Under the pieces are notes generated by a model. It had not been told where the DNA came from. It was given only the letters and a program-made list of their open reading frames with translations, and did not search any database. Both the position numbers and the translations under genes were made by a program. A stretch of 62,887 bases of DNA, counting the filler, from Octopus bimaculoides (taxonomy: Eukaryota), in assembly GCF_001194135.2 (NCBI RefSeq). It is 3 parts of 3 records of this genome, joined end to end, with 100 filler letters (N's around TTAATTAATTAA, not from the genome) between each part and the next. Parts side by side here need not be neighbours in the genome. Positions count along the whole stretch, not along the records: positions 1 to 19,923 come from NC_069002.1; 2 more parts are not named here. One strand, 5' to 3'. Below are positions 1,470-52,271 of the stretch, in pieces (position 1 is the first letter of the stretch; each line of letters begins with the position of its first letter).

Positions 1470-1530
1470 ATGAGAGTTGCACTCCTCTACATTGGCGTAC
1501 TCATTTCATGCACCTCGTCGCAGAAGCAAG
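1470..1530 (+). CDS. Knottin/agatoxin-like precursor copy A, signal-peptide exon (MRVALLYIGVLISCTSSQKQ, phase-1 end)
   Basis: Polypyrimidine tract and AG acceptor at 1461-1462, ATG at 1470, hydrophobic core, donor AAG|gtaaat at 1531. The paralog differs by an in-frame 6-nt indel and 3 substitutions. Confidence 0.85.
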
Positions 1531-1563
1531 GTAAATATTCACCACTACCATCACTTCATAGTA

Positions 1564-2090
1564 TTGGGTTGTCCGGAAAGTTCGTGCCGATTTTCCAAAA
1601 AATTTTCTCACTCAACTCATGTGGTACCCAAACATCGTCGCGATTTGTGTACCCAAGCTTTACGACGGATTTTGATAGGTTGAGGCTTTCTGCCAATTCT
1701 CGGGTTGTGTAATGTGAGTTATTCTCAATTAATGGCTGGATTTGGTCATCATCCGTAGTGGATGGTCTGCCTGATCGCTCTTTATCAATAAGGCTACAAT
1801 CTCCAGCTCGGAACCTTGCGAACCACTTCCGTACAGCTCTTTCGGATAAAGAGACATCAACGTAAACCGCGCATATTTCTTTGGTTGCTTGTGAGGCATT
1901 TTTCCCTTTCCGGAAAAAGAAAAGCATCAAGTGCCGAAAATGAACTTTATCTTCCATTTTAAAGGGTTACAGAATTAACACAGGTTATAGGAACATAAAC
2001 CTTCTTCCACGAAAAGATAGCTTAAACTGTGCTCTAAATGGAGGTGCAGTCAAATCCTATTTTATGGACTCAAAACCATGTTCTAAAATA
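1564..2090 (-). mobile_element. Internally deleted mariner element (N-terminal HTH of transposase) in intron of gene A
   Basis: TA at 1562-1563, then TIR ttgggttgtccggaaagttcgtgccgattt; minus-strand ORF MEDKVHFRHLMLFFFRKGKNASQA...RSGRP...WVPHEL typical of mariner; paralog B has the empty site (catagta|atctcag at about 13936). The other TIR is not visible and is probably in the 2091-2100 gap. Confidence 0.92.
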
Positions 2091-3760: not shown

Positions 3761-3815
3761 ATCGCAATATGTCTGGTGGTAGGTCAGAAACAGATTACGT
3801 TCACATGGATGGAAG
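3761..3815 (+). CDS. Knottin precursor copy A, propeptide exon ((D)RNMSGGRSETDYVHMDG, phase 1 to 2)
   Basis: atttccag|...GGAAG|gtaaga, 55 nt, open in the frame required by the upstream exon; same length and frame as paralog exon 15143-15197. Confidence 0.82.
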
Positions 3816-5951: not shown

Positions 5952-6597
5952 NNNNNNNNNNNNNNNNNNNNNNNNNNNNNNNNNNNNNNNNNNNNNNNNN
6001 NNNNNNNNNNNNNNNNNNNNNNNNNNNNNNNNNNNNNNNNNNNNNNNNNNNNNNNNNNNNNNNNNNNNNNNNNNNNNNNNNNNNNNNNNNNNNNNNNNNN
6101 NNNNNNNNNNNNNNNNNNNNNNNNNNNNNNNNNNNNNNNNNNNNNNNNNNNNNNNNNNNNNNNNNNNNNNNNNNNNNNNNNNNNNNNNNNNNNNNNNNNN
6201 NNNNNNNNNNNNNNNNNNNNNNNNNNNNNNNNNNNNNNNNNNNNNNNNNNNNNNNNNNNNNNNNNNNNNNNNNNNNNNNNNNNNNNNNNNNNNNNNNNNN
6301 NNNNNNNNNNNNNNNNNNNNNNNNNNNNNNNNNNNNNNNNNNNNNNNNNNNNNNNNNNNNNNNNNNNNNNNNNNNNNNNNNNNNNNNNNNNNNNNNNNNN
6401 NNNNNNNNNNNNNNNNNNNNNNNNNNNNNNNNNNNNNNNNNNNNNNNNNNNNNNNNNNNNNNNNNNNNNNNNNNNNNNNNNNNNNNNNNNNNNNNNNNNN
6501 NNNNNNNNNNNNNNNNNNNNNNNNNNNNNNNNNNNNNNNNNNNNNNNNNNNNNNNNNNNNNNNNNNNNNNNNNNNNNNNNNNNNNNNNNNNNNNNNN
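5952..6597. other. Assembly gap predicted to contain the mature Cys-rich exon of gene A
   Basis: Left flank aligns to 18219-18424 and right flank to 19570-19800; in B the knottin exon 18598-18817 lies between these. Confidence 0.7.
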
Positions 6598-6909: not shown

Positions 6910-8400
6910 GTCAATTTCTACTTTTAGCTTTTGTTCACGCTGTAAATTCTTCCGATGGTTGATTCCATGTCCGCTTTACTGGACGGTTATGTGGTTTGGA
7001 GTGAATTTTAGCAGCATTTATAACGATATAGTACCTGAAGACTTGTTCATCCTCAAAATTAATTTCATCCTGTTTTGTAATTTCATACATTATATTTTTA
7101 TGGTAATTATGACCTACATATGTTTCCACTGCACAGATTTTGGATGCTGCTTCTTCAGGTGTTTGTTAGATAGGGTTCAGTAGGAGGTGATTATGGATTG
7201 ATTTGAAACTGAAATCTGATCTGTTCTTAGGTTTCCGCAGTTGACCTCACATTAACACCATTTGCTGTCCGAAGTCAGGGTTTCATGTAATTATGTCAAT
7301 GCAGGTCTCTCTGTGTATTGTAGTAGATGGGTAAGCTGTAGCCATGTTTTCAAGTGTAGAGCTTGTAGTATAATGTTTTTAGTTGTTAATACATTCATTT
7401 CTTTTGCTGTGTTGTTTATGTTTTGCTGTATACATTGGATAGAATATATTAAGAAGCGCAATGAATTATTTGAGTTCAGAATATGTTTTTCTACCCATCC
7501 TTTCACACTCAACTGTGGGTGGGGCATTGAGTTATCTAGAACTTACTTTAAATTTCTTTTTCTTGTCTTTATGTAAGCATTTTAAGGCCTGTTCAAGTTT
7601 AGTATTAAGTAATTTGTTTCTCGATGTAAATATTTGGTATTATCCTTTTATACATATGTCACCATTCCCCCTCACCCCTTGCCCTATATGGTTTAGCTGT
7701 ACTGATTAATTCCCACTCCGTTTTATAGCTATGATTCTTGTCTTTAATTGACTAGATTAGTTTGCTTAGGCTCGTGCCATTCATCTTTTTTCTATCTCAA
7801 AATGAATTAAAGTGATTAGCCAGCCTTCTCTTGAAGTTATGAGAGTTGACCCCTGTATAGAAATACGTCGTTTACCGGTATATACGCCAAATGTTCATCT
7901 AACGCTTTGTTATAGTATTTCTCGTTTAGCTTAAATATCTTCTCAATAGCCGACAGTCTCATTATGCGGGTGGAAATGTTTGTAACTTGGGTTGGGCACT
8001 TGGGGTGATTGCTTTGTAGTGAATGTATTTAAGGTCTTCATTAGGTTTGTGGTATACTTCGAATAGGCCGGTGTTTAGGTCTAGTGTAACATCTAAGAGG
8101 TTGACTGCGGTGTGTTCCACCTCTGTTGAGATGGAAAGTGCTATACCTTTGAAGAACTTACATAATTTTTTCCTATATCTTTCCATTTCTACATTGGAAG
8201 GGTTATTCAAGGTGAATAATGCATCACCCCTGTATACACTTTCCCCTACTTTTGGAAGTTCCTTGTTTGTGCGAAATAAATATATATTCCTATTAGATCA
8301 GTTACTTGTGTCAAGTTCCTTAATACCATTGTTATGTCGAACATAACCGGACTATCCTTTCTCATCCAGTATTTTCATTCAAATTCTATAATAGACATTC
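6910..8400 (-). mobile_element. Decayed Penelope-like element (RT C-terminus and GIY-YIG remnants)
   Basis: Minus-strand peptides WMRKDSPVMFDITM, NLLDVTLDLNTGLFEVYHKPNEDLKYIH and FLIYSIQCIQQ resemble Penelope RT and endonuclease; many stops and frameshifts. Confidence 0.82.
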
Positions 8401-8938
8401 TGGCAGTTAATACTACGTGTAATTCCTCCGTGGTTGACTCGAAGATTTTCAATGCAAATATGTGCTTTGATACAGTGTGAATGACAACTAATAAAAGGCA
8501 TAAATGTTAAACATCAACTGATGCGGTTAGCCGTGACATGGAACATAGCTGACAGCGACCACAGTAGCCGTCCGGATGATATATCCCTCCAAACTAACAT
8601 TAATGATAATACTCGATTTTCAACGAGCGACAAAGGCAGAATACCAAAATATGGAGATCAACACTGGCAGCACCAAAAGACATTCCATGACCAACCAATC
8701 TTCGACTCGCGGACACTGCTCTAACTCCATTCCGTGTATATGAAGGTTTTATTTTCTGATGAATGAAATAAAAACCAACATATTCCTGATATTCCAATGA
8801 TATAATTTCGCATCTACATTCAACAGCTTATTGGATTATAGTTTACTTTATATTCGAAGATAATAGCAGTACATCAGACAATAGAGATGTGTGGAGACGG
8901 TGATCTTCATCGCTATTCCAATAAATGATGAATATATA

Positions 8939-9122
8939 AGCGTAGGAGTGGCTGTGTGGCAAGAAGCTTGCTTCATAACCAAATGGTTCAAGGTTCAGTT
9001 CCACTGCGTGGCAGCTTTGACAAGTGTCTTACTATAGCTTCGGGCCGACCAAACCGTTGTGAGTGCATTTGGAACACGGAAACTGAGAGAAGCTCGTCGT
9101 ATATATATGTATGTATATATAT
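8939..9122 (+). mobile_element. SINE 5' half (same family as 5361), truncated by gap
   Basis: gcgtaggagtggctgtgtgg...ggttcagttccactgcgtggc...cgggccgacc matches 5361-5520. Confidence 0.88.
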
Positions 9123-9414
9123 NNNNNNNNNNNNNNNNNNNNNNNNNNNNNNNNNNNNNNNNNNNNNNNNNNNNNNNNNNNNNNNNNNNNNNNNNNNNNN
9201 NNNNNNNNNNNNNNNNNNNNNNNNNNNNNNNNNNNNNNNNNNNNNNNNNNNNNNNNNNNNNNNNNNNNNNNNNNNNNNNNNNNNNNNNNNNNNNNNNNNN
9301 NNNNNNNNNNNNNNNNNNNNNNNNNNNNNNNNNNNNNNNNNNNNNNNNNNNNNNNNNNNNNNNNNNNNNNNNNNNNNNNNNNNNNNNNNNNNNNNNNNNN
9401 NNNNNNNNNNNNNN

Positions 9415-9454
<40 letters not shown>

Positions 9455-9469
9455 ATATGCCCCCCCCAC

Positions 9470-9590
9470 CCAAATTCCAGGTTTTTCCACTCTACCTATA
9501 TTCAGCGAATACCACAGATGAAGTGCAGATCAACAACGAAAATACTTTCATACAAAAGTACAAACCAAGACTTAACAAACTTTAAACAGA
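9470..9590 (+). mobile_element. Penelope GIY-YIG C-terminal fragment
   Basis: FPLYLYSANTTDEVQINNENTFIQKYKPRLN resembles the end of PLE endonucleases (E..FI..YKP.LN). Confidence 0.6.
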
Positions 9591-10229
9591 ATACATACAC
9601 AAATCACTATTCACACACAAAACTCATTCTGCCACTTAACATGAGGAACCTACACAGCTAACAACCTAAATTTTAGCCACTACATACAAACGTCTTCTGT
9701 CCACTCTCCCACCAGACACATTAAATTTGTTTTGCCTTGATTGTAAATAAACATGTTCACTCAACCTTGTCGGCCTTCTTTTTTGGCGCAAATATATTGT
9801 CACGTGACACTAACGTACGGAAGTAGCGGGAGGCGTACAAAATGTTATAAACTTAATTACGTGTCCATTCTCTATAAACGTTTGACAGAAAACATTTAGG
9901 GTAGTGACTGTTAGGACATGTTCAGTCCACAGTATCAGCCTTAAATCACGACCCCACACATTATCAATTGATACTAACACACAGACGTGGCGGGAAACCT
10001 TCAAGAATGTCTAAGACCAGTCATGTGTCTATCGCGCACAAACACATAATATACACGCACAGATTTTCACATACAGACACGCCTGTTCACACACAACACT
10101 TACAAGCGGGCTCCCAAGCACACGCATACACATGCATACACTGGCATCATACATACGTTCGCACGTGCTTGCACGTGTACACGCGCACACGCACAGACAC
10201 ACGCACACACACACATACACACACATATA

Positions 10230-10690
10230 AAATCACTGTTGTCTCCCTTGCTACTTTTCCAACTTTTCCTTGCGTTCATAACTATATCTATATCAGTGTT
10301 TTTTATGGTAACAAATGGCTTACTAAATTCAAGTGCCTTTTGAAGCAAGCTTTTGGAGATCAAGATGTAAAACTCCAAATTGATAAATTTGAAATTCGAT
10401 TTATCTTCTGTTTTCTTAAGCCATTCCATAGTTGCTCTACTACATATCTATAGATTAAGATTTGTGTTTGCTCTGATGAGTCGTATGATATTATTTAACA
10501 TGGATTTACTAATAATTCCCATTTCATTTTATGTGGGATTTATTAACCTACAGCTAGGGTTTTGCATGAATTTATGTTTATGGTCTTTCTGGATTAATAA
10601 GGTATTTTGTGGGGCATCTTCTATTTTAAACCCCTATAGCACTTGAATTTACGAAGTTATTGTCCCTGCATTAGACTCAAGACATAGAGC
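10230..10690 (-). mobile_element. Penelope RT fragment
   Basis: FKFINLEFYILISKSLLQKALEFSKPFVTIKNTDIDIVMNARKS resembles the PLE RT segment FDI.DFYPSIS..LL.KAL.FA......I.HARKS. Confidence 0.78.
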
Positions 10691-10699
10691 GTTGATGGT

Positions 10700-12400
10700 G
10701 ATATCCTTGTAACTGTAATCCAGAAAATTCAGGATGGAAAAGCAGCTGGAAAAATCTTGATTGTTGGATATCGTACAGGAAGCTAAGCTTCTACCGACCA
10801 TATTTGATCAACCTGTAACAGCGAGCTATCAATAGGAACAGTAGCATACAACACTGGTTAGTTCTAGCAGAGACAAAACTGATCCCCAAATGCAGAATCA
10901 CCCACATGACAAAAAACTACCTGCCAGTTTCATGTCAGAACTTAACGTATAAAATTTATACAGCATGCTTAAACCTCTTCTTCCAAGGCCATTGTGAAAG
11001 TATTAGGTTGTCCGGAAAGTTCGTGCCGATTTATAGTAGCTTGCCTTTCGACTTATTTGCCCTGAAACCACCTCAATTCTGGGAAGAGGGTATTTTCAAG
11101 TTAAAGGTAAGATGGAGACGCACTGTGCAACAAAATGGTTCATATTTGGTTGTTTAAAAATGTAATGGCAAGTATTTATTGACCTTTTTCTTTCCTTTAA
11201 AAATCGGCACGAACTTTCAGACAGCCCAATAATAACATCATTACAGCAGAACAAACAACTGGGAATAAGTGAGTCTGGGGATGTGCCGAACAATTGTTAA
11301 TAAACAAAACTGTAATGGCAGAGGTGCGGGAGCATAGAAGCAACCTAGTCTCAATGTGGCTGGACTACAAGAAAGCCTTTGACTCTTTTCTCCACTCATG
11401 GATGCTAGAAGCCCTTCAACTTGCTAATGTTCCACTGAGCATAGTCAAAGCCATAGCTGACCTGACTTCATCGTGGGCCACCATCTTAAAATTAAACACA
11501 AGGAATGAATGTATTATCACTGATGAAATAAAGTATCCCAGAGGCATTTACCAAGGGGACTGCCTCTCTGTGATGTTGTTTATATTTTCTGTAAATCTCA
11601 TGGCATTCATGTTAAGGAAGTCTGAAGGATATCTCACTGATTCACAAGGAAACAGAAATACCAAAATTACACACCGCTTCTTTGTGGATGACTTGAAACT
11701 ATATGCAAAGGATATGCACGAAATGGAAAAGGAGCCATGACCCGGTTACATTCTCAAAGGATATAGAGTTGGAGTTTGATCAAGATAAATGTTGCTATAT
11801 GATTGTAAAAAGAGGGAAAACTGTAAATCAGACTAGCAACATCTGCATTAACGACTTAACTGTTTCCTCTATATCTGATGAGGAATTTTACAAGTATCTA
11901 GGGGTGGATGAAAACATATGTTACAATGACAGCTGTAACAAATCACGCGTCACTAAAGAATATTACAGCCGAATAAAGAAACTTTGGACTTCAGAACTCT
12001 CTGCATTCAATAGAACTGCGGCCCACAATGTGTTTGCAGTGCCAGTACTCATACCAACATTTGGGCTGCTTGATTGGACGCTTGATGCGATCCGAGCCAT
12101 TCATGTGAAAATCCAGAAGATACTAACAAACACACATAATTTCCACATAAACAGTGGCGTAGACCGCCGCTACTAAAACGAAAACAAGGCGGCGGAGACT
12201 TAACATCGATTCAAACTGCCTTTGAATGTCTTATCATATCCCTTCAGCAACATCTTTTAACTACCAAGTGTTAAAGTGCATCCCTAGACCAAGTTTGCAT
12301 ACATGAGGCTGAGAACATTATATGACTTGGAAGGCAGCTCCTTGAGCAGCATTCCTTGTCCAAAGAAGTCGCTCGGCTCTACCGCAACATATCAGATGAA
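10700..12400 (+). mobile_element. R4/Dong-type (RLE clade) non-LTR retrotransposon RT fragment, pseudogenised
   Basis: CQNLTYKIYTACLN, WLDYKKAFDS, GIYQGDCLS..LF, HRFFVDDLKLY and YKYLGVDE motifs with frameshifts. Confidence 0.92.
11003..11229. mobile_element. 227-bp mariner-derived MITE nested in the LINE RT
   Basis: TIRs ttaggttgtccggaaagttcgtgccgattt and aaatcggcacgaactttcagacagcccaa, TA TSDs at 11001-11002 and 11230-11231; removal restores the LINE frame (..HCES/NNIITAEQ). Confidence 0.93.
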
Positions 12401-12879
12401 TGGATGAGCCTATAATTTTTGCCACAAAGGCAGCTTGTGGGAGGGGATTAAGTCGACTACACCAACCCCCAGTGTGTAACTGGTACTTATTTAACCATGG
12501 CTACGAATAAATGAAAGGCAAAGTCGACCTCGGCGGAATAACTACATCAATAATAATAACAACAGTGACAATACACGTATCAGAGTGTCACTAACGCTGT
12601 ATGTTCTTATTCGTTTCCGGCCACATCATGGCTAACTGAAAAAGCACTGCAGGCAGTATGTGAAACCGGTGTTTGTCGGCATAAGAAATGCAACACATGG
12701 CCTTTGCATTGCCGTGTTTCTCTCTTATATCGAGGACCACAGCTTGAAGTATGTTTTTTTTTTATTACATTTCAACTTTACAGTTATACACACAATAAGG
12801 ACGTTTGATCTATGTAGCATATAAACTGTCATATACCTACACACATAAATACGTAGAAATATATTTATGTATATATCTA

Positions 12880-13150
<271 letters not shown>

Positions 13151-13168: not shown

Positions 13169-13286
13169 ACACGGTATAAGTATCATCACCTTGGTTAATC
13201 TGTGTAATTATTATCAAATAGCTTGGTTCTTGTACAACAGAAATATAGAGACCACTCAAATAATAATTGGAGAATATAAGAAATAG
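13169..13286 (+). other. Candidate non-coding 5' exon of knottin gene B
   Basis: gtgcag|ACACG...AATAG|gtaatg, 118 nt, as in the A homolog. Confidence 0.4.
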
Positions 13287-13836
13287 GTAATGTTTAAACT
13301 ATGAACTTTTGGTTGTGAGTTGATATGTAAAAGCGGGTTGAATGGACATTTATTTATATGGTTGTTATTGGTTGGATGGTATTTTTAGGTTGAGAGTAGA
13401 AGTTTTCTGAGAGTTGCGTTTGCTTTTGAGGTAATTTTGTGGAAGACCTAACAAACACCCTAACAAACACTAATGTGGCTGGCTGGCCGAATCGTTAGCT
13501 CAGCGGGCGAAGTACTTTACAGTACTTTGTCCGTCATTACGCTCTGAATAATATCACCACCGAGATCGAATTTGGGCTTCACCCTTACGGGATCGAAGTA
13601 AAGAAGTACCAGCAATGTACAGGGGTGGATGTAAGCAAATAGTCCTCTTACCCAAAATTTCAGGCCTTGTGTATCAATCGAAACGATTATTCACCGATGA
13701 TGTCATCTATATTGTAGCTTAAGGATGTTCTTTTCGCTTTTATGATTGAAACAATTTAAGATTTAAAAAGTTAGGTAAAAGTGCATGACATTCTTCAGTT
13801 GCTTTCTTTCTTATATTCCATATCATTAGTTGCGCG

Positions 13837-13903
13837 ATGAGAAGAACTCTTGCACTCCTCTACATCGGCGTACTCATTTCATGCGCCTCGTCGCAGAAGC
13901 AAG
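13837..13903 (+). CDS. Knottin/agatoxin-like precursor copy B, signal-peptide exon (MRRTLALLYIGVLISCASSQKQ)
   Basis: Acceptor cattag| at 13828-13829, ATG at 13837, basic N-terminus, hydrophobic core, A-S-S/Q cleavage-like site, donor AAG|gtaaat. Confidence 0.88.
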
Positions 13904-14150
13904 GTAAATATTCACCACTACCATCACTTCATAGTAATCTCAGAGGCGATGAAAGAAGAGAAGAAAGAGAGAGTGAGAGAGAGAAGGGGAGATTAAGAGA
14001 AGCGGGGTGAGTCATTGTTTTTTATGTAGTCAAATGGCGCGAGATTACTCTCTTCAGCAGCATTTTCTATCTTCCATAATATTTTCATGAGGCCCATGCT
14101 ATTCTTGTGTTCATCTGTATCATACAATAATATGCATTATCGCTCATTTA

Positions 14151-14545
14151 TGAAGTGGTATGGAAAGGTCCCCGGACTAGTTAAAAGGGGCGACAACAGA
14201 TGGCAGCAAACAGTTGGGCCAGTTACTGACCTTCATTAGGCAGTGTACCGAGAGACATCGTTGTATTTACTCCGCAAGTTTAGAAATTTGTGTTTATGTG
14301 ATCACGTGTATGCTGTAATCTGCGATATTTGTCGTAGACATGAAGTTGGAACAAAGAGCCAACGTGAAATTTTGCGTTAAACTTGGAAAGTCTACTACAC
14401 AGACATTGAACATGCTTCGGCAAGCTTACGTTGAAGAGGCAATGGGTCGTACGCAATGATTCGTGAGGTACGGGTGCTTCAAAAGCGTAAGAACACCCTT
14501 CGAAGACGCAGACCGATCTGGAAGACTTGTCACAAGAATCGTAAA
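14151..14545 (+). mobile_element. Truncated mariner (second family) 5' end in intron of gene B
   Basis: TA then tgaagtggtatggaaaggtcccggac TIR-like start; ATG at 14340 gives MKLEQRANVKFCVKLGKSTTQTLNMLRQAY...RSGR with an internal stop. Confidence 0.85.
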
Positions 14546-15142
14546 GAACTACCTTAATTTCAACACTTCAGATGTAACCCAGGAATAGTTGTCAAACGCG
14601 TCTTCATTAGATTATATAATTTGGATATGAAACTAGAATGAATCCATTTATAAAAATATATGCAAGTAATGACCGAGTTAAGAAATCCCAGGCCTTTTGG
14701 CTTTGCATAATTATTTCAGACGATCTAAGACTTGCTTCGTTCTTTAAACTGTGAATGCGTATGAAAATGCAAATTACGCAGACAAGAAAGATATAGAGAG
14801 GCCACAATACCATTAAATAGTTTTCACATTATTCGTACATAGTTTATGGAATGACGATCCAGTTCGGCTCCTAATCCTGGTCAGTTACGTAATGTTGATA
14901 AACCATAAAGATGCCGAAACATCGATGTCCATCGTTCCTGAATCCTGCATAATCTTCAGAGCTATCCCCAATAAACTAGCGTATATATCACCACTTTGAG
15001 AACTCGGTAACAGCTCTGGTTATTCAAATATCCGCTGAGACTAGTTGGGTCATTTGTATATTTCTATACACAAGAAAACATACTCGAAATCTTTGGATGT
15101 TTATATACTTTAAAGTTCTAGGATGTCTTATATCATTTCCAG

Positions 15143-15197
15143 ATCGCAGAATGTCCGATGCTAGGCCAGAAACAGATTATGATCGTTTCGATGGAAG
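15143..15197 (+). CDS. Knottin precursor copy B, propeptide exon ((D)RRMSDARPETDYDRFDG)
   Basis: catttccag|...GGAAG|gtaaga, 55 nt, phase 1 to 2. Confidence 0.85.
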
Positions 15198-15339
15198 GTA
15201 AGAATTATATATTGACAATTGTTTGCGAATGGCATCAGTAATAGTGAAATAATTATGATAATTCTTTTATTTTTTTTCTATGTGTGTTTGTCTCAGAGAA
15301 TGTCATAGTAACTATCTAAAATATTTTCTGAATCAGTGA

Positions 15340-17745
15340 AAGTGGAAAATGTTTTGTAAAATTGTTGTGGAAGGATTCCAATCATCCCACTTGTGACTGA
15401 AAATGGACTGAGCCATTGTTATAAATTAAAGATCTGTGAGCGATTGGCAGTTCAGGTTGGTAAGCAGTTCACTGTGAGCCACGAAAGAGAGCGTTGCGTC
15501 TTATGTAATAGTAGTAATAGTGCATCGTGTAAATACTTCCTTTCTCCAATGCTTCGTTATATTATATATCCAATACAAGGATATAAAGGTTGTGATGAGT
15601 TGTTCGAAGATGTTTAAAATTATTTTAGTACGAAAACATCGTTTCAACAGAGAGAACTTATTGGTTTTCGTGGTGCAATTGCAACAGCAACAGCAGCAAA
15701 TGCAACAGCAACTACAGCAGCAGCAACAACAGTTACAACAGCAATTACAGCAGCAGCAGCAGCAACTACAACAGCAACAACAAGAACACCAACAGTTTCA
15801 GGAATTAATGTTGAAGAAGTCTGAAAATACTTCAGATTCGTACCCGCGAGACAGCGTAGCAAATTCGACTGAAGAATTCATTTATAAACCAGAAGAAGGA
15901 ATTACCTTCTCTGCATATTTACGAAGATACGAAGAATTCTTCAAAGAAGAGCGTGAAAGTTGGTCCGACAAGAAAAAAGTACAAGTAATTTTAAGAATGT
16001 TATGTCCTACTGAACGGGAAAATATAGTAAATATATTCTAGCGAAGAAACCAGGTGAAATTTGTTTCGGGGAAACAATTAATGTTGAAGTGCTTAATCTT
16101 TATTCAAGGGCTTACTGCAAACAAAGATGCAGATATACGTTCCCGGATATTAAAAGAATTAAAACAGGACCAAAAATTAAAACTGCAGGCAATAGCAGAA
16201 GAATGTCAAAGGATAATAAATCTATGACATGACGTAAATAAAACTGAAGGGAAGGATTGCTCTCAGATTCAACCATCTCAGACAAAATACGAACGAGCCT
16301 AAAAGAAAATTTGTCTATGTAAAAATGAATAACACAAACGTAAAGTTAGAACTGGATACAGTTTGCGACATCTCAATAGTTAACACAGATACTTGATAAA
16401 GATCGGGTGATCTAGATTAATCGAAACTTCGAAAATCGTCCGCGGCGTTTCAGGAAAAAAGTTATATTTTAAGGGCGAATTGATAGGTAGCATTACGTTA
16501 CGCGAAAAAAATCCTTAAAAGCTAAGGTTTTTGTGTTAAATAATATCACAAATATATTCGGAACTGACTGGATGGAATTATTTAAACCATAGGACCTCCC
16601 CATAAATCATTTCTGCAAAAATGTGAATGATTTTTCCTACAGTAGAAATAAGTCATGAGACGAATTAATAAAAAAATTTAAAATATTTTTCCTGAAGTTC
16701 TGACTGATAAATTAGGTCTCTGCACCAAAATGAAGGCGCAGTTTCAACGAAAAGAAAACGCCATGCCAGTTTTTAAACAAAACCGAATTGTAGCGATCGC
16801 AACGTTAGAACAGATAAAGTTAGAGTTACAGAGACTATAAAAAATTGGAGTTATCAAAACTGGGGAATATAGTCAATAACCATCACCAACTGCGTACGCT
16901 AAGAAAAAACAATAATAAAAGCAGAGTGTGTGCTGATTTTCCCACTGGTTTGAACGAATGTCTTAAAACGTGCTACTATCTGCTACCTGCCCCGGAGGAT
17001 ATTCTTGTGAAATTAAATGGTGGCAAGATATTGTCTAAATTCGATCTCTCTGACGCGTACCTATAAATCAGAGTAGAGGATGAATGCTCTAAATACTTAA
17101 CAATTAACACACATAAAGGGCTGTATAAATTCAACAGGTTACCATTTGGCTTATAAGTAGCACCAGCGATTTTTCAACAGATTATGTATGCAATGTTTGT
17201 GGACTGTGAATTCGCAATTCCATATCAGGTGATATTCTCATTAAAAGCAAATCCAGAGATCAACACGTAGAGCTCGTAAAATGTGTATTCGAAAAAATTA
17301 GGGATTACTACTTTATTTTAAGTGACGAAATGTGTGAATTTTGTTTACCGAAAGTGAGATATTTAGAACAAATCATTGACAGAAATGGACGTCGACCAGA
17401 CCCGTGGAGGGCAGACGCAATTAAAAATATGTCCTAACCGACAAATATATCAACGTTACAAGCAGTTTTAGGATTGGTAAATTATTACCAAAATTATATT
17501 CCAAATATGCATAAGGTGAGAGTTCCACTAAATAATCTGCTGAAAAAAGATATGAAATGGAATTGACAGGAAAATTGTCAAAAGTCATTTGACGAAAAAA
17601 AAAAAAAAAATACTCACATCTGATTTGTCGTATGCACACTTTGATCTTGCAGCGGAGAATATTGTAGCTTCAGACGCTTCTGAGTATGGCATAAGAGCAG
17701 TAGTGCTACACCAATACAAAGATAGTAACATGAAGGTGATGCACA
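15340..17745 (+). mobile_element. Decayed Gypsy LTR retrotransposon (poly-Q gag, protease remnant, RT/RNaseH) in intron of gene B
   Basis: gag-like FIYKPEEGITFSAYLRRYEEFF; RT motifs RVCADFPTGLNECL, LSKFDLSDAYL, TINTHKGLYKFNRLPFG; RNaseH VASDASEYGI; multiple stops. Confidence 0.92.
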
Positions 17746-17891
17746 TTATTCACATTATTTACATTTGACGGATACTTGTCCTCATCTTGTTTGTTGTTAA
17801 CGCAACATTTCGGCTGATATACCCTCCAGCCTTCATCAGGTGTCTTGGGGAAATTTCGAACCTGGGTTCTCATTCCTAAGGTATTTTTCGA

Positions 17892-17947
<56 letters not shown>

Positions 17948-18010
17948 GAACCCGGAATCTTGGGGCTAGTAGCCCGCGCTCTTAAGACCTACGCCATATG
18001 TCAATGGGCA
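17745..18010 (-). mobile_element. Composite SINE: tRNA-like head, (AAT)n and a body carrying a hammerhead-like motif
   Basis: Minus strand: tggcgtaggtcttaagagcgcgggctactagccccaagattccgggttcg head, AAT repeat, then body also present at 20905-21058. Confidence 0.8.
17798..17846 (-). ncRNA. Minimal type-I hammerhead-ribozyme-like motif
   Basis: Minus strand aagacac-CTGATGA-a-GGCTG-gagggtatat-CAGCC-GAAA-tgt-t-gcgtt: core, 5-bp stem II and stem I pairing; one extra A before stem II and a probably decayed ACGT stem III. Confidence 0.65.
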
Positions 18011-18597
18011 TAGCCGTTGAATGATAATTCCAGAAGTGGAAGTAATCTAAAAGGTAACATGTTTGCTTGGAGGGCGAACTGATGAATCATTATTGTACTG
18101 AAAATTGATCCATTCAAAATCAGTTACATACTTCACATACACTCGTTCGGAAATATTCGTTCTATCTAATATCAATATCGAAGTAAACTTGGAAGTCAAG
18201 AAAAAATTATATATATAGCTAAAGCTAATTCATATTTTTCGGGATTATACTCGCTGTGCAACATAATTGTCTAATTGCAAAATGCAACATGATTGTACAG
18301 TAGTGGAAATGATGTTGCAAATAGCAAAATAATTTCTAATCTTAACTTCAAAGCAATCGAAATATCCGATGCCACTACAGATGCTGTGGCAAGTTTGGAA
18401 GCAATAAAATATCAACGCCAACTTAAAAAAATAAATAAATAATCAGAAAGTAATCTCACAGAAAAGAAACCACATTTTAGAGAAAACGTATATAAAAGGA
18501 TATAGATATAATGTAGTTACAATATTCCTGGCGTATTAGGATCGTCCAAATTTCTAATTACGATGTTTATGTATTTTTCTGTTTTCTCTTTTTACAG

Positions 18598-18817
18598 AGG
18601 CAGATATAAGAGAAATAGTTTGTGTTTGAATTGGCAGATTCCATGTAAACCCAATAAGAACAGTCCAGATAATAATTGCTGTAAAACTCAAGCTTGTGTA
18701 TGTAACCTCCTATGGCGTGACTGTTTATGTACACACACAGTTTCAAGAACAAATATTGTAATACATAATTATATATGCTTATGTATTTGTTTGTTAGCTT
18801 CTTGTTTTTATGTGTAG
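18598..18817 (+). CDS. Knottin precursor copy B, terminal exon: RGRYKR site then 8-Cys ICK/agatoxin-like domain (NSLCLNWQIPCKPNKNSPDNNCCKTQACVCNLLWRDCLC...)
   Basis: Branch-like CTAAT at 18554-18558, long pyrimidine tract and acceptor tttacag|A in phase 2, matching the previous exon; Cys spacing C-X6-C-X10-CC-X4-C-X-C-X6-C-X-C; TAG at 18815-18817 followed by AATAAA. The 3' end of the CDS is less certain. Confidence 0.87.
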
Positions 18818-18870
18818 TGTGAACCTGTTCTTTCTACGTGGTTGGAGATTATTCTAATTCACATAAAAGT

Positions 18871-18876
18871 AATAAA
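18871..18876 (+). promoter_or_regulatory. Candidate polyadenylation signal of gene B
   Basis: AATAAA 54 nt after the stop codon; the AT-rich context makes chance occurrence possible. Confidence 0.45.
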
Positions 18877-19271
18877 ATAACAATTAAATTACAAAGTGAA
18901 GATGCAAGAATATCTTTGCGTTCATTCGTTGTACAATTGTTCGTATATAAACGTTCGTTGCGTAAATCGTAATAAATACGTTTGCATACAAAAATTCATT
19001 GTGTNNNNNNNNNNACTGCCATGAGGCGGGAAAGTATACTAGTCCTTATATATTTAATACTCTAAATTTAATACTCAACATTTCATATATTCAGTAAGAC
19101 ATTCAATACTTCATTTCATTTTACTATTTATATTATATATTCCATATTCTATATCCTACATTAATTTTATAAGAATACAAATAAAACATAAAAAACAGAC
19201 AGTGTTGGAACTCTTTTAAATAATATATTCCTCTATACACGATCATATAAAACCCTTTTTTATATTTTTTA

Positions 19272-38347: not shown

Positions 38348-41069
38348 ATTTGCGCGAATGTGTCTGTGTGTCCGTGTGTGCTCCGTGTGTGTTTATGTAT
38401 GAAAACGGTATAGATTGTTGGGTTGAGCCAGTAGATGCCAGAAAACAGTCTCGTTTCATATGTATAGAAAAAATATAAACAGAGGGGTGTGGAGAGAGTA
38501 CGATGAAAATAAATACGTTAACAAAAAATGGCCGAGATGATAGAGTGGGTCGCAGCAAGAATAATAAATGACCGAGTTATGTATAATGTCTGACAAATAT
38601 GACAAATATTGACAATAAAATGTAAGAAGCGATGAAGGAGCAATTAAAATATATTTTTTTGCGTACTTACATTAATCCATAGGCTTTAGCCCTGGCGATC
38701 GTAGTGTGAGGTCCAGAATTTTGCGAATGTGTGGTGGAAAAAGCCGACACTTTACCGGCAGTGCCGGATTGTTTTTGGCGTTTCATAGATCAAAATTGTA
38801 ATATTTCCTTTAAATAAGAGATATAACAGCTCCTTCAGTTATGATGGTACTCCTGAATTTCCTTTGCTTTTTCGGCCAGTTAATTTAAACTTATCCTAAT
38901 TGCTATTTAACATACATATTTTTGTTTATAATCCAGTTAAATTCTTAACTGTTCTGGAGGTATCCAGTGTATATGTATACAATTAAGTGAAAACGTGTAT
39001 TGGTATACCATCAAGGGTATAATACACCTTCTACTTCTACATAACGTCTTCCGAATAAACGTGTATTTTTAAAAATATCCAAATGAAGCACATCTAACAG
39101 ACCAATCTAAACAAGACTAGAATCACACACACAGTCGGCAAGCTAGAAGAACATTTAACGGAGTGAGAAAGAACATCGAGATGACGAGTGATAGGGGGGC
39201 AAGAACGAAAATGAGAAGAGTCTAGTAGAGAAGAAGGAAAGTGAAAGAGAAGGGATAGGTGAAAAGTAACAACAAATGCAGGCAAGAGAGGACGTCGACG
39301 TTTGCAGTTGTAGTCGCAGAACTGTACTGTACTCCACTCAGCTTCTAACACTCACTTAACGAGGAGAGTATCAGTAAGAGACAGAGACATGAAAACCCTT
39401 CCATTGAAATCAGGAAATAACACATCCACTTTTCTCACCGAAACTATTTTGTGTTAGTAAGGTAAAAAGGCAGCAGTTCTAGCGTCGAAGATAGAGAGAG
39501 TGAATGGATGAAAACATCTCAGAAGAGTCCTGTGATTAAAACAGAACGTAAATGTATTTTTCCAAACATATTTCACTGCTGCCTTCTACTGTTAATCTGT
39601 TACTCTTTCTCTCACTCCGCATTTCACTCACTCTAATAATATTGGTTGCACTCCCACCATTTTTATTTCATTAATCTCTTTCTTTTTTTTTTTCTCTCCC
39701 CCTCCTTTTTCTCGTGTCTGCTTTTATTACACACTATTTCTTCTGTCTTTCACTAGCTTGACGGTAATATGGCTGTGGATGAAAGGAAGACAAGAAACGA
39801 AGGAGGGAAAAAGAAGAGTGTAGAGGAAGTAGGAGTAGGAAGAGTGCCAATGCTACGAGAAGAGAAGTATGTCGAGGGTGTTGGGAATAGGAGGATGTAT
39901 AAACGCAAACAAGCACGTACTCGAACACACATACACAACCTTTCAACAACTATGCTTTCATATAGTCTGCATACAGACATATGTTGTACATATCAAAAAG
40001 TACTCACAAACACAGATTCACGCACATACACATACACACAAGCATAACAGTCGCACAAATTGTCAGAACGAGTAAGACACAGATTCATTAAAAGCGTGGG
40101 ATTTATTTCTGGGTGATAATTGAAAGAACCCTACCACCACCACCAACCCATCTGAGGGTTGCAGTCAGGGAGTTATAAACATTAATGCATAAAATATTAA
40201 ATCGGCTCAGAAACTATAGATTTTTCTGAATATTAAATATACTTAAATATTCAACTGATTTCATGTTTATGTTGACGTGTCGCCACTTAGTTGCAAAATT
40301 ACCATAAAAATCCAGACAATCATCCATATATTTACATAGATACATACATATCCTTCGTGCACATATAAAGCGCACGTACATATACATATGTACTTAATTA
40401 CTTCCTTATAGGAATCCTTGCATATCATAATAATTAATAAACACATGTTTGAAATGTTTTAATTAATTAAATTCAAATGAATATTTTTTTAAGGATTCTT
40501 CCAAAATTTATGTTAAAAATCTTTGCATTTATTGTATTAGGGAAATGACAACGTCAATTAATTTAATTTTACAAATAAGAAAATATACATAAAAAAAAAC
40601 AATTGCTAATAAATTTTATATTTAGAAACGGCAGACGGCAGAATATGAATAAAAGTCTATATGTTCATCTATTCATGCGTGTATATGTGTGAGTGTGTGT
40701 GTGCGTGCGCGCTTATAAGCAAGTGAATGCGCGTGTGAGTGCAATATACTTGTTTTAATTTCTACTGTGCCGCGCGCTCGCGTAGGTATGTATTTCAAGG
40801 TGTGTGTATGTGTATGTGTGTGTGTGTGTGCGCGCGCCCGCATCAATGCGTATGCGAAGGTCTGTATAAGCTTGTAACTTATAAAACAGCAGAAGTGTTA
40901 TCTCCCCCTACGTAAAACTGTTTATACATATGAGTGTATAACTGTATGAATCCATGTGTGCGTGTATGTCTACATGTATACACACACAAACACATACACA
41001 CACACACATGCACACACACACATATACACACACACATACACACACATTTATGTGTGTGTGTGTGTCTGC

Positions 41070-41112
<43 letters not shown>

Positions 41113-41119
41113 TTTACAT

Positions 41120-41276
41120 GTAGGCATGGCTGAGTGGTATGAAGCTTGCTTTCCAAAGACAATTGTTCCGGGTTCAGTCCCAGTTCGAGGCATCTTGGAA
41201 AAGTGTCTTCTATTACAGCCTCGGGCCGATAACAACCTTGTGAGAGGATTTGATAGAAGAAATTGGAAGATGTCCG

Positions 41277-41374
<98 letters not shown>

Positions 41375-41545
41375 GTTCCTGTGTGTGTGTTGTTGTGGAT
41401 GTGTTTGTTCCGCACCACCAATAGACCACCGGTATTAGTGTGTTTTATGTCCATGTAACTTAACGTTTCGGTAGAAGAGTTCGATAGAAAAATAACAGGC
41501 TTTAAAGAAATAAACAAGAACTGTGGTCGATGTATTCGAGTAAAA
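41120..41545 (+). mobile_element. Older major-family SINE with expanded (GT)n centre
   Basis: Head gcatggctgagtggt...ccgggttcagtcccag, and tail elements match the family. Confidence 0.8.
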
Positions 41546-41598
41546 AATGTTTCTACTGAAATAAGTACATCAAAGATATATATGTGTGTGTGTGTGTG

Positions 41599-41617
<19 letters not shown>

Positions 41618-41686
<69 letters not shown>

Positions 41687-41736
41687 TAAATACACACACG
41701 TATGTATGCATGTATGCCTGTATGCATGTATGTATG

Positions 41737-41767
<31 letters not shown>

Positions 41768-41808
41768 GCATGTATGTATGTATGTATGTATGTATGTATG
41801 TATGTATG
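41618..41808. repeat. (GATA)n plus (GTAT)n microsatellites
   Basis: Directly visible. Confidence 0.95.
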
Positions 41809-41945
41809 CTTAAGACATATGCTTCAAAAATATGCGTTTACATATCTGGCCCCAAAGTGCGACGACCTGGCAAGTAGCTTCTATTCTAGCCTCAAGCTAA
41901 CTACTACATTGTTTCTGAATTTGGGAGATTGTGGAAATGTATCGT

Positions 41946-42003
<58 letters not shown>

Positions 42004-42124
42004 TTTGGTAACTGCTGTTAGTTTCTTTACCTTTACCCATTCCTTAACGTTTCGGCAAAAAGATGTTTTAGAATAATACTACTACATTCTAAATAATTAT
42101 GGGGTCCGATTTGTTCGCATAAAC

Positions 42125-42354
42125 CTGTAGTTCTCAAACGGGGTCCATATGACCCTTGCAGGTCCAGGTAAGATTTTGTTGTTAAAATTGAAGTGCAATA
42201 AATTGTACTTCTACAATTCACAAAATATTTTACCAGAATTCCTAATAACAGTGAATTGTAAAATATTTTTAAAACTTCAAATGCCTAACGGGGTCCACCT
42301 GAGCAAAATAGGAATCGAAGGTGTCGACAGAAGAAATATGGCTGAGAACCACTA
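42125..42354. mobile_element. hAT-type MITE
   Basis: Ends ctgtagttctcaa and tgagaaccacta resemble CAGTGGTTCTCAA TIRs; flanked by 8-bp TSD GCATAAAC/GCAGAAAC (7 of 8 match). Confidence 0.75.
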
Positions 42355-42449
42355 GCAGAAACCATTCAAACGCTATCCAAAGACTAATACAAATAAAGGA
42401 ATAAGAGAATATATACATATTCTTATACACATATACACAAGTCTATATT

Positions 42450-42655
42450 CTTTTAATTGTTTTAGTCATTTGACTGCAGCCATGCTGGAGCATCACATTG
42501 AGGTGTTGTAGTCGAACACATCGACCACAGAACTTATATTTCTTTTATGACTTGTACATATTCTCTTGGTCCCTTATGCTGAACCGCTACATAAGAGTAC
42601 GCAAACACACTAACACTGGTGGTCAAATGGTGAGGTGGACACACAGACAAACATA
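42450..42655 (-). mobile_element. Major-family SINE 3' half
   Basis: gtcatttgactgcagccatgctggagca...gtcgaacacatcgacc is the reverse complement of the family tail. Confidence 0.75.
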
Positions 42656-42675
42656 CGTGGATAGATACATACATA

Positions 42676-42724
<49 letters not shown>

Positions 42725-44321
42725 NNNNNNNNNNNNNNNNNNNNNNNNNNNNNNNNNNNNNNNNNNNNNNNNNNNNNNNNNNNNNNNNNNNNNNNNNNNN
42801 NNNNNNNNNNNNNNNNNNNNNNNNNNNNNNNNNNNNNNNNNNNNNNNNNNNNNNNNNNNNNNNNNNNNNNNNNNNNNNNNNNNNNNNNNNNNNNNNNNNN
42901 NNNNNNNNNNNNNNNNNNNNNNNNNNNNNNNNNNNNNNNNNNNNNNNNNNNNNNNNNNNNNNNNNNNNNNNNNNNNNNNNNNNNNNNNNNNNNNNNNNNN
43001 NNNNNNNNNNNNNNNNNNNNNNNNNNNNNNNNNNNNNNNNNNNNNNNNNNNNNNNNNNNNNNNNNNNNNNNNNNNNNNNNNNNNNNNNNNNNNNNNNNNN
43101 NNNNNNNNNNNNNNNNNNNNNNNNNNNNNNNNNNNNNNNNNNNNNNNNNNNNNNNNNNNNNNNNNNNNNNNNNNNNNNNNNNNNNNNNNNNNNNNNNNNN
43201 NNNNNNNNNNNNNNNNNNNNNNNNNNNNNNNNNNNNNNNNNNNNNNNNNNNNNNNNNNNNNNNNNNNNNNNNNNNNNNATATATATTCAATATTTGGGGG
43301 AAAATTGGTATATGTCGATTAGTGTGCTGAAGTCTTGAGTAGAGCAATGGCTACCTGGAGTCATCGGAGTATATTTCCGTTGGATCTACTTTGGGAATTC
43401 TGCATTGTTAGTTCAGATAACAATAATAATAATTTCATAAGCAACGGGAAGATAGAATTGGTATTAATCTTTATTTTGTACAACGGCCCATACTCCTACT
43501 GTCCCTTATGGGTGGGAGTCCTTTCAACCTTTTGTGTTGCATCAGTTTTGCAGTCTGGGTCTCATGGTATTCATTAGGATCTTTAGCGAGACACAAAACT
43601 GTATGTATAGATAGATACACCTGATGAGACCCAGACTGTAATTTGTATTTTATATTTATCATTTATTATATTTGTTAATTGATGCGAGAATATAAGGATA
43701 AAATCACGGTAATGATTTTTATCAGGTAGTCAGCATGCAATTAAAATTTATAAGTAATTTGTACATTAAATTAATAATTATATACATATGTATATAATTA
43801 TAATATCTGAATGCGCCGGTTTTTTTAAGCATGTTCCACTCTTGATGTAATTATATACATATATGTATTATTTTTAAGCATGTTGCTCTCTCAATATAAT
43901 TATATACATATCTGTATAATCACTAATTTGATGTATTATTTATTATATTATATCATATTTATTATAAGAGTATAATATAATATAATATGACGTTAATAAA
44001 TTTTTAATTTTTCAATTCACAATTGTATATCTCCATTTACATTTCATGTTCATAATTTTAATATATACGCATGTGAACTGAAAAGTTTTTCTTTACTGAA
44101 TTGGGTATTTTAAACGGTTCAGTCGGTGAAAGATCGCATGTTATAATCCCTAATTTCCTTGCATTGGGTTCAATTTAAAATATTACTTATAGATGTGTAT
44201 ATATACATATACATATATACANNNNNNNNNNNNNNNNNNNNNNNNNNNNNNNNNNNNNNNNNNNNTTAATTAATTAANNNNNNNNNNNNNNNNNNNNNNN
44301 NNNNNNNNNNNNNNNNNNNNN

Positions 44322-44636
44322 CGTCTTAAACAGGCGGGTCAGGTATTCCTCGTCGACGCCCAGGTTCGCCCCGAGATCGTCGTCGTACCTTCCCTCCACT
44401 AATCCACTATAGAATGCGTTAGTTGTGATGCAGTCGCTCAAGGTTGACCCGGGTTGTTGGAGTTGCCGAAGAGCAGCGCGACACTCGCCCTTCCTCGGCC
44501 TCTTCTTGATCCATGACTGCAGTTCGGTCATGGAGACGAGCTGCGGGAAAGCGCGCCGCACAAACGGTGACCACACCTGTTCACCGCTGTCTACGTAGAG
44601 CCGGAGATGTCGCAGTCTCAGCGCGTGTCTGCGCAG
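44322..44636 (-). mobile_element. Tx1/L1-type LINE ORF2 fragment with open frame, GC-rich
   Basis: LVSMTELQSWIKKRP..ECR.AL...LVEGRYDD..GVDE..L..LFKT aligns with the decayed + strand segment at 53090-53300, which runs into a LINE zinc-knuckle region. Confidence 0.75.
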
Positions 44637-44675
44637 ATAGATAGATAGATAGATAGATGTATATGTACGTATATA

Positions 44676-44789
44676 CAGGGTGTCCACATGGAGAAAATGA
44701 AATCATGACATAAACAATAAAATATAAGAAATAATAATTTCTTAAAGTATGTGTTAATCCCCATGTACCCAGACTTCGTGGACACCCTG
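44676..44789. mobile_element. 114-bp Tc1/mariner-type MITE
   Basis: Perfect 12-bp TIR CAGGGTGTCCAC/GTGGACACCCTG with TA on both sides. Confidence 0.85.
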
Positions 44790-45231
44790 TATATTGTATT
44801 TATGGGTGTGTGTGTTTGTATGTATGTATACACTTAATCGACGTCGTCTTTGTTGATTTCATAAGGGTATGTTCAGTTTTCTGACCATTGTTCTAAAATT
44901 CTATTACTTTAAAGAGAGAATATGCTTCACATAGCGATTATTTAACGTATAGATTGGTTCGTTGAGGATGGTCACGTAGTGAGATTAAGAGATTTTCGTT
45001 CAATTTTTCGCTATTTCCGTGTGTTTTAAATTATGTATCCACCGCGAGGGAATGTCACGTCCAAATGATATATGACAGTCAGAATATTAGGTGTCAAAGG
45101 TGATAATTGCTTTCGAATGTTAGGCTGCTTTAGCCCTTTAAATGTGCCCAGGAGGTGTGTGAGCGGCTATTATCTTGGTTACCGAAGATGTGGTGTTATT
45201 ATTTTTCTTTTTCTGCTATACCGTTTTAGTG

Positions 45232-47650: not shown

Positions 47651-47712
<62 letters not shown>

Positions 47713-50376: not shown

Positions 50377-50462
<86 letters not shown>

Positions 50463-51225: not shown

Positions 51226-51412
<187 letters not shown>

Positions 51413-52104: not shown

Positions 52105-52139
<35 letters not shown>

Positions 52140-52271
52140 GTGTAAACCCATATATATAAGTATATATTAATTCATTATATATCCAAGTATACACATGTTT
52201 GTTATAAATATATACACAAACACACACACGCACATATGCATAATTATGCACACATATATACGTTTATTTAG

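Follow-up and report, generated by a model that had tools for sequence, protein, structure and literature searches.

LOC128250515 of Octopus bimaculoides, a highly expressed three-exon gene for a probable divergent CCWamide/agatoxin-like peptide with a hydrophobic C-terminal tail

The window analyzed here is a stretch of 62,887 nt of DNA from Octopus bimaculoides (assembly GCF_001194135.2), and the subject of this work is a short gene located at positions 13837 to 18817 on its plus strand, for which an earlier note had proposed three exons encoding a secreted peptide with an agatoxin-like cystine knot. The three-exon model is correct, and the locus, LOC128250515, is protein-coding and expressed. 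Its product is very probably a divergent paralogue within the family of CCWamides and agatoxin-like peptides (ALPs), an assignment based on gene structure, the score against a family profile and a reciprocal exhaustive search. As a whole, the product is read, with reasonable probability, as a tail-bearing, membrane-linked or propeptide-trimmed effector or modulator of CCWamide/ALP ancestry. The family, its fold, its gene structure and the RefSeq annotation (in which the gene is unnamed) are known already; what is new is that amidation has been lost, that a hydrophobic tail is conserved and that the family has expanded specifically in octopus.

Gene model and transcription

The spliced coding sequence (CDS) of 342 nt specifies 113 amino acids (aa), the same peptide as in the earlier note, whose three exons and two GT-AG introns, in phases 1 and then 2, were matched exactly. 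The features of the gene are as follows.

13837-13903, plus strand: coding exon 1, 67 nt, ending in phase 1, donor CAAG/gtaaat (from sequence, splice sites and RNA)
13904-15142, plus strand: intron 1, 1,239 nt, GT-AG, phase 1
15143-15197, plus strand: coding exon 2, 55 nt, acceptor tttccag/, donor GGAAG/gtaaga, ending in phase 2
15198-18597, plus strand: intron 2, 3,400 nt, GT-AG, phase 2, with transposon remains
18598-18817, plus strand: coding exon 3, 220 nt including the TAG stop at 18815-18817, acceptor ttttacag/
18623-18730, plus strand: predicted knottin domain, Cys50 to Cys85, C-x6-C-x10-CC-x4-C-x-C-x6-C-x-C, CLNWQIPCKPNKNSPDNNCCKTQACVCNLLWRDCLC
18731-18814, plus strand: C-terminal extension THTVSRTN-IVIHNYICLCICLLASCFYV, a polar linker followed by a 20-residue hydrophobic end (18755-18814)
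18818-18900, plus strand: 3' untranslated region (UTR), end approximate; RNA depth of ~10^4 to ~18867 and then a drop; AATAAA at 18871-18876

The exon 1 product, MRRTLALLYIGVLISCASS/QKQ, comprises the signal peptide and the first residues of the propeptide; by inspection, the signal peptide has an n-region (MRR), a hydrophobic core and A-S-S at positions -3 to -1. Exon 2 supplies an acidic propeptide, DRRMSDARPETDYDRFDG, together with AG, the first two bases of Arg41. The codon for this residue is split AG/A across 15197/18598, and exon 3 runs from its third base through G and R-Y-K-R (18602-18613) to the mature peptide and the tail. The R-Y-K-R site thus lies wholly within exon 3 and was not, as had been proposed, created by the junction of exons 2 and 3, which makes only Arg41. 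The gene had also been described as hidden from annotation, but RefSeq already holds an identical model: the protein, referred to here as P0001, matches the "uncharacterized protein LOC128250515" of O. bimaculoides at 100% identity from end to end. Colinearity with locus L001 places this part of the window at ~29.12 to 29.14 Mb of CM046622.1 (GCA_001194135.2), with the gene at ~29.13 Mb. The introns had been described as filled with transposable elements, and transposon remains were found in them.

Expression was assessed in an index of public sequencing runs as the depth of sequence words. In run X1, word depth was ~8,000 to 60,000 on the exons compared to ~23 on both introns, and was 0 across the intergenic interval 9771-12460. 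By exon, depths were 21,000 to 47,000 for exon 2 and ~40,000 to 60,000 for exon 1 from position 13827 onwards. This contrast between exons, introns and intergenic DNA indicated that X1 is an RNA run and that its intronic signal is pre-mRNA.

The earlier note had named junction-spanning RNA as a check of the model, and contigs of X1 cross both 13903/15143 and 15197/18598. At the first joint (GT..AG, depth 8,570), the tail of exon 1 runs into ATCGCAG; reading of loose ends likewise put the exon 1 tail directly before exon 2 in X1 contigs. For the second junction, contigs contained ...TTCGATGGAAG joined to AGGCAGAT, with AGGCAGAT directly behind 15197, and the start of exon 3 was preceded in the junction contig by TATGATCGTTTCGATGGA/AG/AGGCAG. 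A contig of depth 5,036 matched the genome colinearly from 18639 to 18867, from the knot past the tail and the stop codon to part of the 3' UTR, indicating that the tail belongs to the reading frame of the mRNA. Two kinds of candidate joint were rejected. A joint from 15197 to 18599 (depth 15) was one base off and, as finer placement gave the canonical GGAAG/AGGCAG, was an artefact of alignment or of a minor contig; joints such as 13671 to 17892 link copies of an abundant repeat (17640-18020) and do not represent splicing of LOC128250515.

Words of exon 1 or exon 3 were detected in a single RNA run, X1 (2022, same species label, from a study that also includes two other species), among the runs listed in the index (at most four per study); all other holders were DNA runs of Octopus bimaculoides or a related species. 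Three deep RNA runs from 2026 (X6 to X8) had no reads on the exons, and the four RNA runs of O. bimaculoides listed for 2015 gave a share of 0.00.

High depth began at 13827, 10 nt 5' of the ATG, where it stepped up from 94. An AG at 13828-29 adjoins this step, and the same acceptor is used for the 5' exon of RefSeq LOC128250512 (protein P0002); an unlocated 5' leader exon may be joined at this AG. A leader exon was sought over 9420-12900 and by similarity to that of P0002, outside a repeat at 12976-13083, and none was detected. A 600-nt RNA contig with a depth of ~94 extends over 13257-13826 into exon 1 and may reflect a minor upstream start or read-through from a paralogue located upstream.

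Relationship to the CCWamide/agatoxin-like peptide family

Spiralian CCWamides are orthologous to arthropod ALPs (Thiel et al. 2021, PMC8557429). The family is defined by eight Cys residues, an aromatic residue between Cys6 and Cys7 and an amidated aromatic C terminus, while its genes have three exons, of which the first codes for the signal peptide and the last for the mature peptide, and introns in phases 1 and then 2, the phase-2 intron interrupting a basic codon of the cleavage region after its second base (PMC8557429). The receptor and function of these peptides are still unknown (PMC8557429; PMC13311285). The earlier note had recognized an agatoxin-like family with a signal peptide, propeptide, dibasic site and 8-Cys knottin, which agrees with the present results, but had not named CCWamide, the spiralian branch of this family.

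The loop lengths of P0001 (6, 10, 0, 4, 1, 6, 1) follow the Cys order of the family, and spacing identical to this is present in 5 of 30 published members (Cgigas, Mizuhopecten, Ennucula, Laevipilina and Barentsia1). The second loop of 10 residues, regarded previously as unusually long, is the spiralian norm, being shared by 15 of the 30 members and the commonest length among spiralian CCWamides. A Trp between Cys6 and Cys7 (NLLWRD) occupies the position of the family aromatic residue. The exon layout, with a phase-2 split of a basic codon ahead of the mature peptide, is that of the family, and the same phases and codon split were observed in paralogues P0002 and P0012 and in the upstream copy.

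A hidden Markov model (HMM) was built from the mature peptides of 30 published CCWamides and ALPs (PMC8557429 supplement), with 2,000 Cys-preserving shuffles as the null. P0001 scored 32.2 bits, a value reached by 1 of the 2,000 shuffles, and paralogue P0003 scored 41.9 bits (0 of 2,000); P0002 alone gave a weak score (14.9 bits; 64 of 2,000). Accepted members scored 26.8 to 66 bits when each was left out in turn, and hence LOC128250515 sits at the low end of the family (32 versus 27 to 66 bits). For the reverse direction, 1.84 billion representatives were searched exhaustively by HMMER with a profile of three octopus paralogues. Matches were obtained to the O. bimaculoides paralogues, to CCWamide-type proteins of Octopus, Argonauta and the gastropod Gigantopelta and, also of CCWamide type, to a scallop-like sequence and one marine-metatranscriptome sequence; the sole other match was one spurious repeat protein. 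This exhaustive search returned no annotated orthologue of the tail-bearing subfamily in other cephalopods, and a word-indexed protein search returned O. bimaculoides proteins only.

The precursor of LOC128250515 resembles those of other family members in consisting of a signal peptide, a nonconserved propeptide, a basic site and an 8-Cys peptide. It differs in having a 28-residue tail with a hydrophobic end in place of aromatic-Gly-(K/R), and there are multiple copies of the octopus gene, arranged both in tandem and dispersed, whose loops have diverged strongly. Judged by sequence, LOC128250515 is distinct from the canonical octopus CCWamide neuropeptide: CCWamide of Octopus vulgaris ends in ...CRCVNKLWGG (PMC8557429 supplement), and the sequence of LOC128250515 differs from it. 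A second CCWamide-type gene, LOC106867751 (...CRCDDTLG), is common to O. vulgaris and O. bimaculoides.

The C-terminal tail

CCWamides end 5 to 9 residues after Cys8 with an aromatic residue and Gly, with or without a basic residue, whereas P0001 runs on for 28 residues. This tail, which replaces the amidation signal, was missed in the earlier note; given its presence, a simple soluble secreted peptide is not the obvious product. The mean Kyte-Doolittle hydropathy of the last 19 to 20 residues was 2.01 for P0001, 2.48 for P0002 and 1.85 for P0012, and AlphaFold2 (AF2) modeled the tail as a putative helix (residues 92 to 112). A motif, (H/C/Y)NYI(C/F)..I(S/C)L(L/F)(S)A, occurs in the reading frame of 6 to 7 paralogues whose knots are only ~30 to 40% identical. 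It is kept despite linker lengths of 10 to 16 residues, and most copies end 3 to 10 residues past it. The tail is absent from LOC128250511, LOC106867751 and the canonical CCWamide. In P0001 the linker contains S-R-T-N (S-G-S or D-S-S in paralogues), which is followed by a spacer of 7 to 9 residues. A signal peptide, a small disulfide domain, a short linker rich in S/T/A/G/D/N and a hydrophobic end would correspond to the arrangement of a GPI-attachment signal or a C-terminal membrane anchor; GPI-anchored proteins typically have an omega region of small residues ~8 to 12 residues ahead of a terminal hydrophobic stretch.

The tail could be given a different meaning if the product were a soluble defense, antimicrobial or reproductive peptide of a specialized gland or stage, with the tail as a propeptide or as functionless read-through of a former 3' UTR. 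The DNA of the tail is AT-rich, of low complexity and UTR-like, and a 28-codon open frame is estimated to arise by chance with a probability of ~0.13 at this composition. Tail ends vary among copies, and 10 of 28 tail positions, the Cys included, differ between P0001 and a second expressed paralogue. Retention of the motif in frame in paralogues with such divergent knots, despite indels in the linker, speaks against this account, as do the preservation of hydrophobicity even where residues change and the amino acid identity of the hydrophobic part in a related species; we consider a soluble peptide of this kind unlikely.

Predicted fold and comparison with toxin families

The AF2 model of the knot contains a beta-hairpin at residues 26 to 29 and 38 to 41. 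Almost all of the top Foldseek matches of the AF2 models were inhibitor-cystine-knot (ICK) knottins (TM 0.5 to 0.7), and the neighbors included Hc3a, delta-atracotoxin, psalmotoxin, agelenin, omega-agatoxin IVA and AgRP/ASIP. In a Pfam scan, paralogues P0003 (22.2 bits) and P0005 (25.1 bits) passed the gathering score of 21.3 for Toxin_9 (PF02819); P0003 also scored 23.5 bits on Pfam Conotoxin, below the cut-off of 25.1. A sequence search of the PDB returned only omega-agatoxin IVA, with a nonsignificant E value of ~2.

U8-agatoxin and other spider ICK toxins have the same cysteine framework as LOC128250515 and a similar C-x-C-N-L-x-W-x-x-C-x-C segment, and spider ICK toxins were the best, although not significant, structural neighbors of the AF2 models. 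Loop 2 of arthropod ALPs has 6 residues compared to 10 in P0001. LOC128250515 further differs from the spider toxins in its hydrophobic tail, and expression in a venom gland was without support in these data. Conotoxin-type families likewise have three exons, a conserved signal peptide and a hypervariable mature peptide, and hence a similar evolutionary pattern; the octopus family is not one of them, given the score below threshold and the CCWamide ancestry, and neither a ratio of nonsynonymous to synonymous substitution (dN/dS) above 1 nor a venom context was supported.

These likenesses bear on the proposal, put forward in the earlier note, of a soluble ICK toxin of the venom or saliva, produced in the posterior salivary gland and recruited from CCWamide as spiders recruited an ALP (U8-agatoxin). 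Recruitment of the ALP family into venom has precedent (PMC8557429; PMC13311285), and this proposal would fit with a tandem multigene array in which exon 1 is 100% conserved from P0001 to P0002 and divergence is much greater in the mature region, and with very high expression in a single sample. Less compatible are the hydrophobic tail with its extra unpaired Cys, unlike a soluble venom peptide, and the negative outcome of full-text literature searches for ICK or agatoxin-like peptides in the venom of octopus. Furthermore, the four listed 2015 runs were at 0.00, and only X1 among the indexed RNA runs holds the transcript. A venom role is, therefore, weakly disfavored, with the tissues represented within the run index unverified. 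The 2015 octopus genome project reportedly sequenced RNA of the posterior salivary gland, although the presence of these data in the run index is unconfirmed. Taken together, we give this proposal a low probability.

Divergence of the paralogues

Exon 1 was 100% identical between P0001 and P0002 and 85 to 100% identical among the paralogues compared. Intron flanks were mostly 72 to 92% identical, with lower values (59% and 65%) in 2 of 12 comparisons, while the DNA coding for the knot was 62 to 71% identical between paralogues. Divergence was concentrated in a 78-nt block (18615-18692), equivalent to the 26 N-terminal residues of the mature peptide, which failed to align at 90% likeness when P0001 was compared with the second expressed paralogue; outside this block, identity in the flanks and the tail was ~91%. 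The same length-preserving replacement of the 78-nt block, a cassette-like mosaic, was seen in a DNA contig from organism E (run X33).

In the closest related species (organism B, run X3), the orthologue of exon 3 contained neither an indel nor a stop codon. Five nonsynonymous changes were detected, four in knot loops and one at the second residue of the tail, together with three synonymous changes, and the hydrophobic part of the tail was identical in amino acid sequence. The combination of a conserved signal peptide and diverged loops resembles, by analogy, that of toxin and effector gene families, and gene conversion of the flanks could be the source of this mosaic.

Proposed role

The presence of multiple copies, the diverged N-terminal knot loops beside conserved flanks and the near-exclusive, very high expression in one sample point to a role as an effector or modulator and make a conserved neuropeptide role less likely. 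In the proposed sequence of events, the prepropeptide would enter the secretory pathway by means of its 19-residue signal peptide, cut after A-S-S, and a proprotein convertase would cleave after R43-Y-K-R46. The 8-Cys domain would fold as a peptide of the ICK type, while the tail would most likely act as a glycosylphosphatidylinositol (GPI) attachment or membrane-anchor signal or be removed as a C-terminal propeptide. A specialized secretory cell would thus display or release the knottin, which would bind an extracellular membrane target, as ICK peptides do.

Tethering of the peptide is put forward tentatively, the balance of our judgment being somewhat on the negative side. Rather more doubtful is a wider proposal, that the octopus lineage turned CCWamide/ALP into a multigene set of GPI-anchored ICK "tethered toxins" which would modulate channels or receptors at or near the producing cell in the manner of Lynx1. 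Ly6/uPAR prototoxins (Lynx1, sleepless/quiver) are GPI-anchored modulators of channels and receptors with a toxin fold. They share with the octopus precursor a signal peptide, a small disulfide-rich domain of toxin type and a C-terminal hydrophobic signal, a likeness that is one of functional analogy only; the fold is three-finger in the former and putatively ICK in the latter, and GPI attachment of the octopus protein is suggested by hydropathy and inspection.

Several observations weigh against the reading of the product as a tail-bearing effector or modulator of CCWamide/ALP ancestry. No amidation signal was found: Cys8 is followed by THTVSRTNIVIHNYICLCICLLASCFYV and the stop codon, without the Gly-basic end of the family. 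P0001 fell below the Toxin_9 cut-off of 21.3 bits in the Pfam scan (15.1 bits for the whole protein and 19.1 for the mature peptide). Confidence in the AF2 models was moderate (pLDDT of 62 at full length and 73 for the knot only), none of the Foldseek matches was significant (best E value, 0.29), and the fold of the 8-Cys domain is consistent with an ICK while the disulfide connectivity is not readable from the models. The candidate GPI-attachment signal or membrane anchor, like the signal peptide, is assigned by inspection and hydropathy, and the tails of P0012 and P0003 are longer, charged and unlike clean GPI signals. Crude pairwise Nei-Gojobori estimates of dN/dS in the knot were 0.37 to 0.64, not above 1, and positive selection is not claimed. 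Finally, X1, the sole expressing run, carries no readable tissue label.

The common family, precursor layout and gene structure would also suit a conventional neuropeptide or neurohormone, with LOC128250515 as the octopus CCWamide orthologue or its equivalent, acting through the CCWamide/ALP receptor, itself unknown. We rate this as slightly less probable still than a venom toxin: a canonical CCWamide ending in WGG is present in O. vulgaris in addition to LOC106867751, LOC128250515 is without an amidation signal, the family has at least nine copies with diverged loops, and no transcript was observed in X6 to X8 or in the other indexed RNA runs. Short exons in AT-rich, transposon-filled DNA with assembly gaps nearby might suggest a pseudogene or a spurious model made of chance open reading frames (ORFs) in repeat-rich sequence, but this is effectively refuted by the RNA evidence, with spliced RNA at a depth of ~10^4 and both junctions, as well as by identity to the RefSeq model, an intact orthologous exon in a related species and a significant profile match to a defined family.

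In full-text literature searches, no description was found of the gene cluster or LOC128250515, nor of any octopus peptide of the agatoxin-like or ICK type. CCWamide/ALP is an ancient cystine-knot family of protostomes, met until now as a conserved neuropeptide or as a recruit to spider venom. The octopus locus presents a third outcome, in which the family expanded, lost the amidated end, gained a tail and diverged in the N-terminal knot loops, with two copies very highly expressed in a single sample. The findings place five "uncharacterized" genes of RefSeq in a named family and flag extra copies outside the called or RefSeq models, one of them lost in an assembly gap. They also provide named candidates for octopus-specific modulators of channels or receptors and a natural setting in which to test for membrane tethering of an ICK peptide.

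Tandem array and the upstream paralogue

Both the tandem array to which LOC128250515 belongs and the second expressed copy within the window had been overlooked in the earlier note. The order of the array at ~29.13 Mb is the upstream copy, LOC128250515, LOC128250512, LOC128250510 (on the opposite strand) and LOC128250511, with LOC128250512 located 2.3 kb downstream of LOC128250515. Additional copies occur at 36.2 to 36.4 Mb of the same chromosome, CM046622.1 (LOC106867751 at 36.23 Mb and LOC128250537 at 36.41 Mb), such that one chromosome carries at least 9 to 10 copies of the family. The features of the upstream paralogue are as follows.

1470-1530, plus strand: coding exon 1, MRVALLYIGVLISCTSSQKQ, donor gtaaat
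3761-3815, plus strand: coding exon 2, DRNMSGGRSETDYVHMDG and AG, same phases
5952-6597, no strand: assembly gap of 646 N, in which exon 3 is expected at ~6125

The position of exon 3 is expected from the colinearity of intron 2, as 5739-5951 matches 18212-18424. In X1, exon 1 of this copy had a depth of ~30,000, with its k-mers partly shared, and a loose end, ATCGCAATA, is the start of its own exon 2, which had a depth of 7,000 to 11,000. The upstream copy is, like LOC128250515, spliced and highly expressed in X1. A second type of exon 3 transcript was detected in this run at a depth of 4,590, with an intact ORF and a tail ending in ...PYNVCCKGYSCVCNLLWRDCLCAHSGSRAKIVIHYYICLYIISLAYCFYV before the stop codon; this transcript probably belongs to the gap of the upstream copy. 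As exon 3 falls in the 646-N gap, the annotation probably lacks the upstream copy or contains a truncated form of it.

Three copies at 36.41 Mb were not among the called genes (on L002, minus strand: 17824-17546, 20462-20394 and 19100-19044; 2666-2436; and 3731-3609). One uncalled copy at 36.41 Mb is close to LOC128250510, and a stop codon shortens its tail to ...SISLLSAFSL. It is these copies, and not LOC128250515, that are the family members outside the called genes.

In the RefSeq model of LOC128250512, a small 5' exon located 3.5 kb upstream contributes the initial MPKCNGCLSCA, after which the signal peptide MRRTLALL... follows as in P0001 (L001 10001-10026 and 13491-13569). This extension is probably 5' UTR read as CDS, with the real start Met at L001 13503.

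Repeats and transposon remains

Intron 2 of LOC128250515 contains an ORF with a DUF7083/poly-Q match at 15520-16041 (plus strand) and a short interspersed repeat at ~17640-18020, which reached a contig depth of 10^5 to 10^6 in DNA runs of two species and was also abundant in RNA. Within intron 1 of the upstream copy, an HTH_48 domain of a Mos1-type transposase was detected at 1556-1957 (minus strand; E value, 5e-21), and a fragment of an RVT_1 reverse transcriptase lies in intergenic DNA at 11294-11740 (plus strand; E value, 1e-8).

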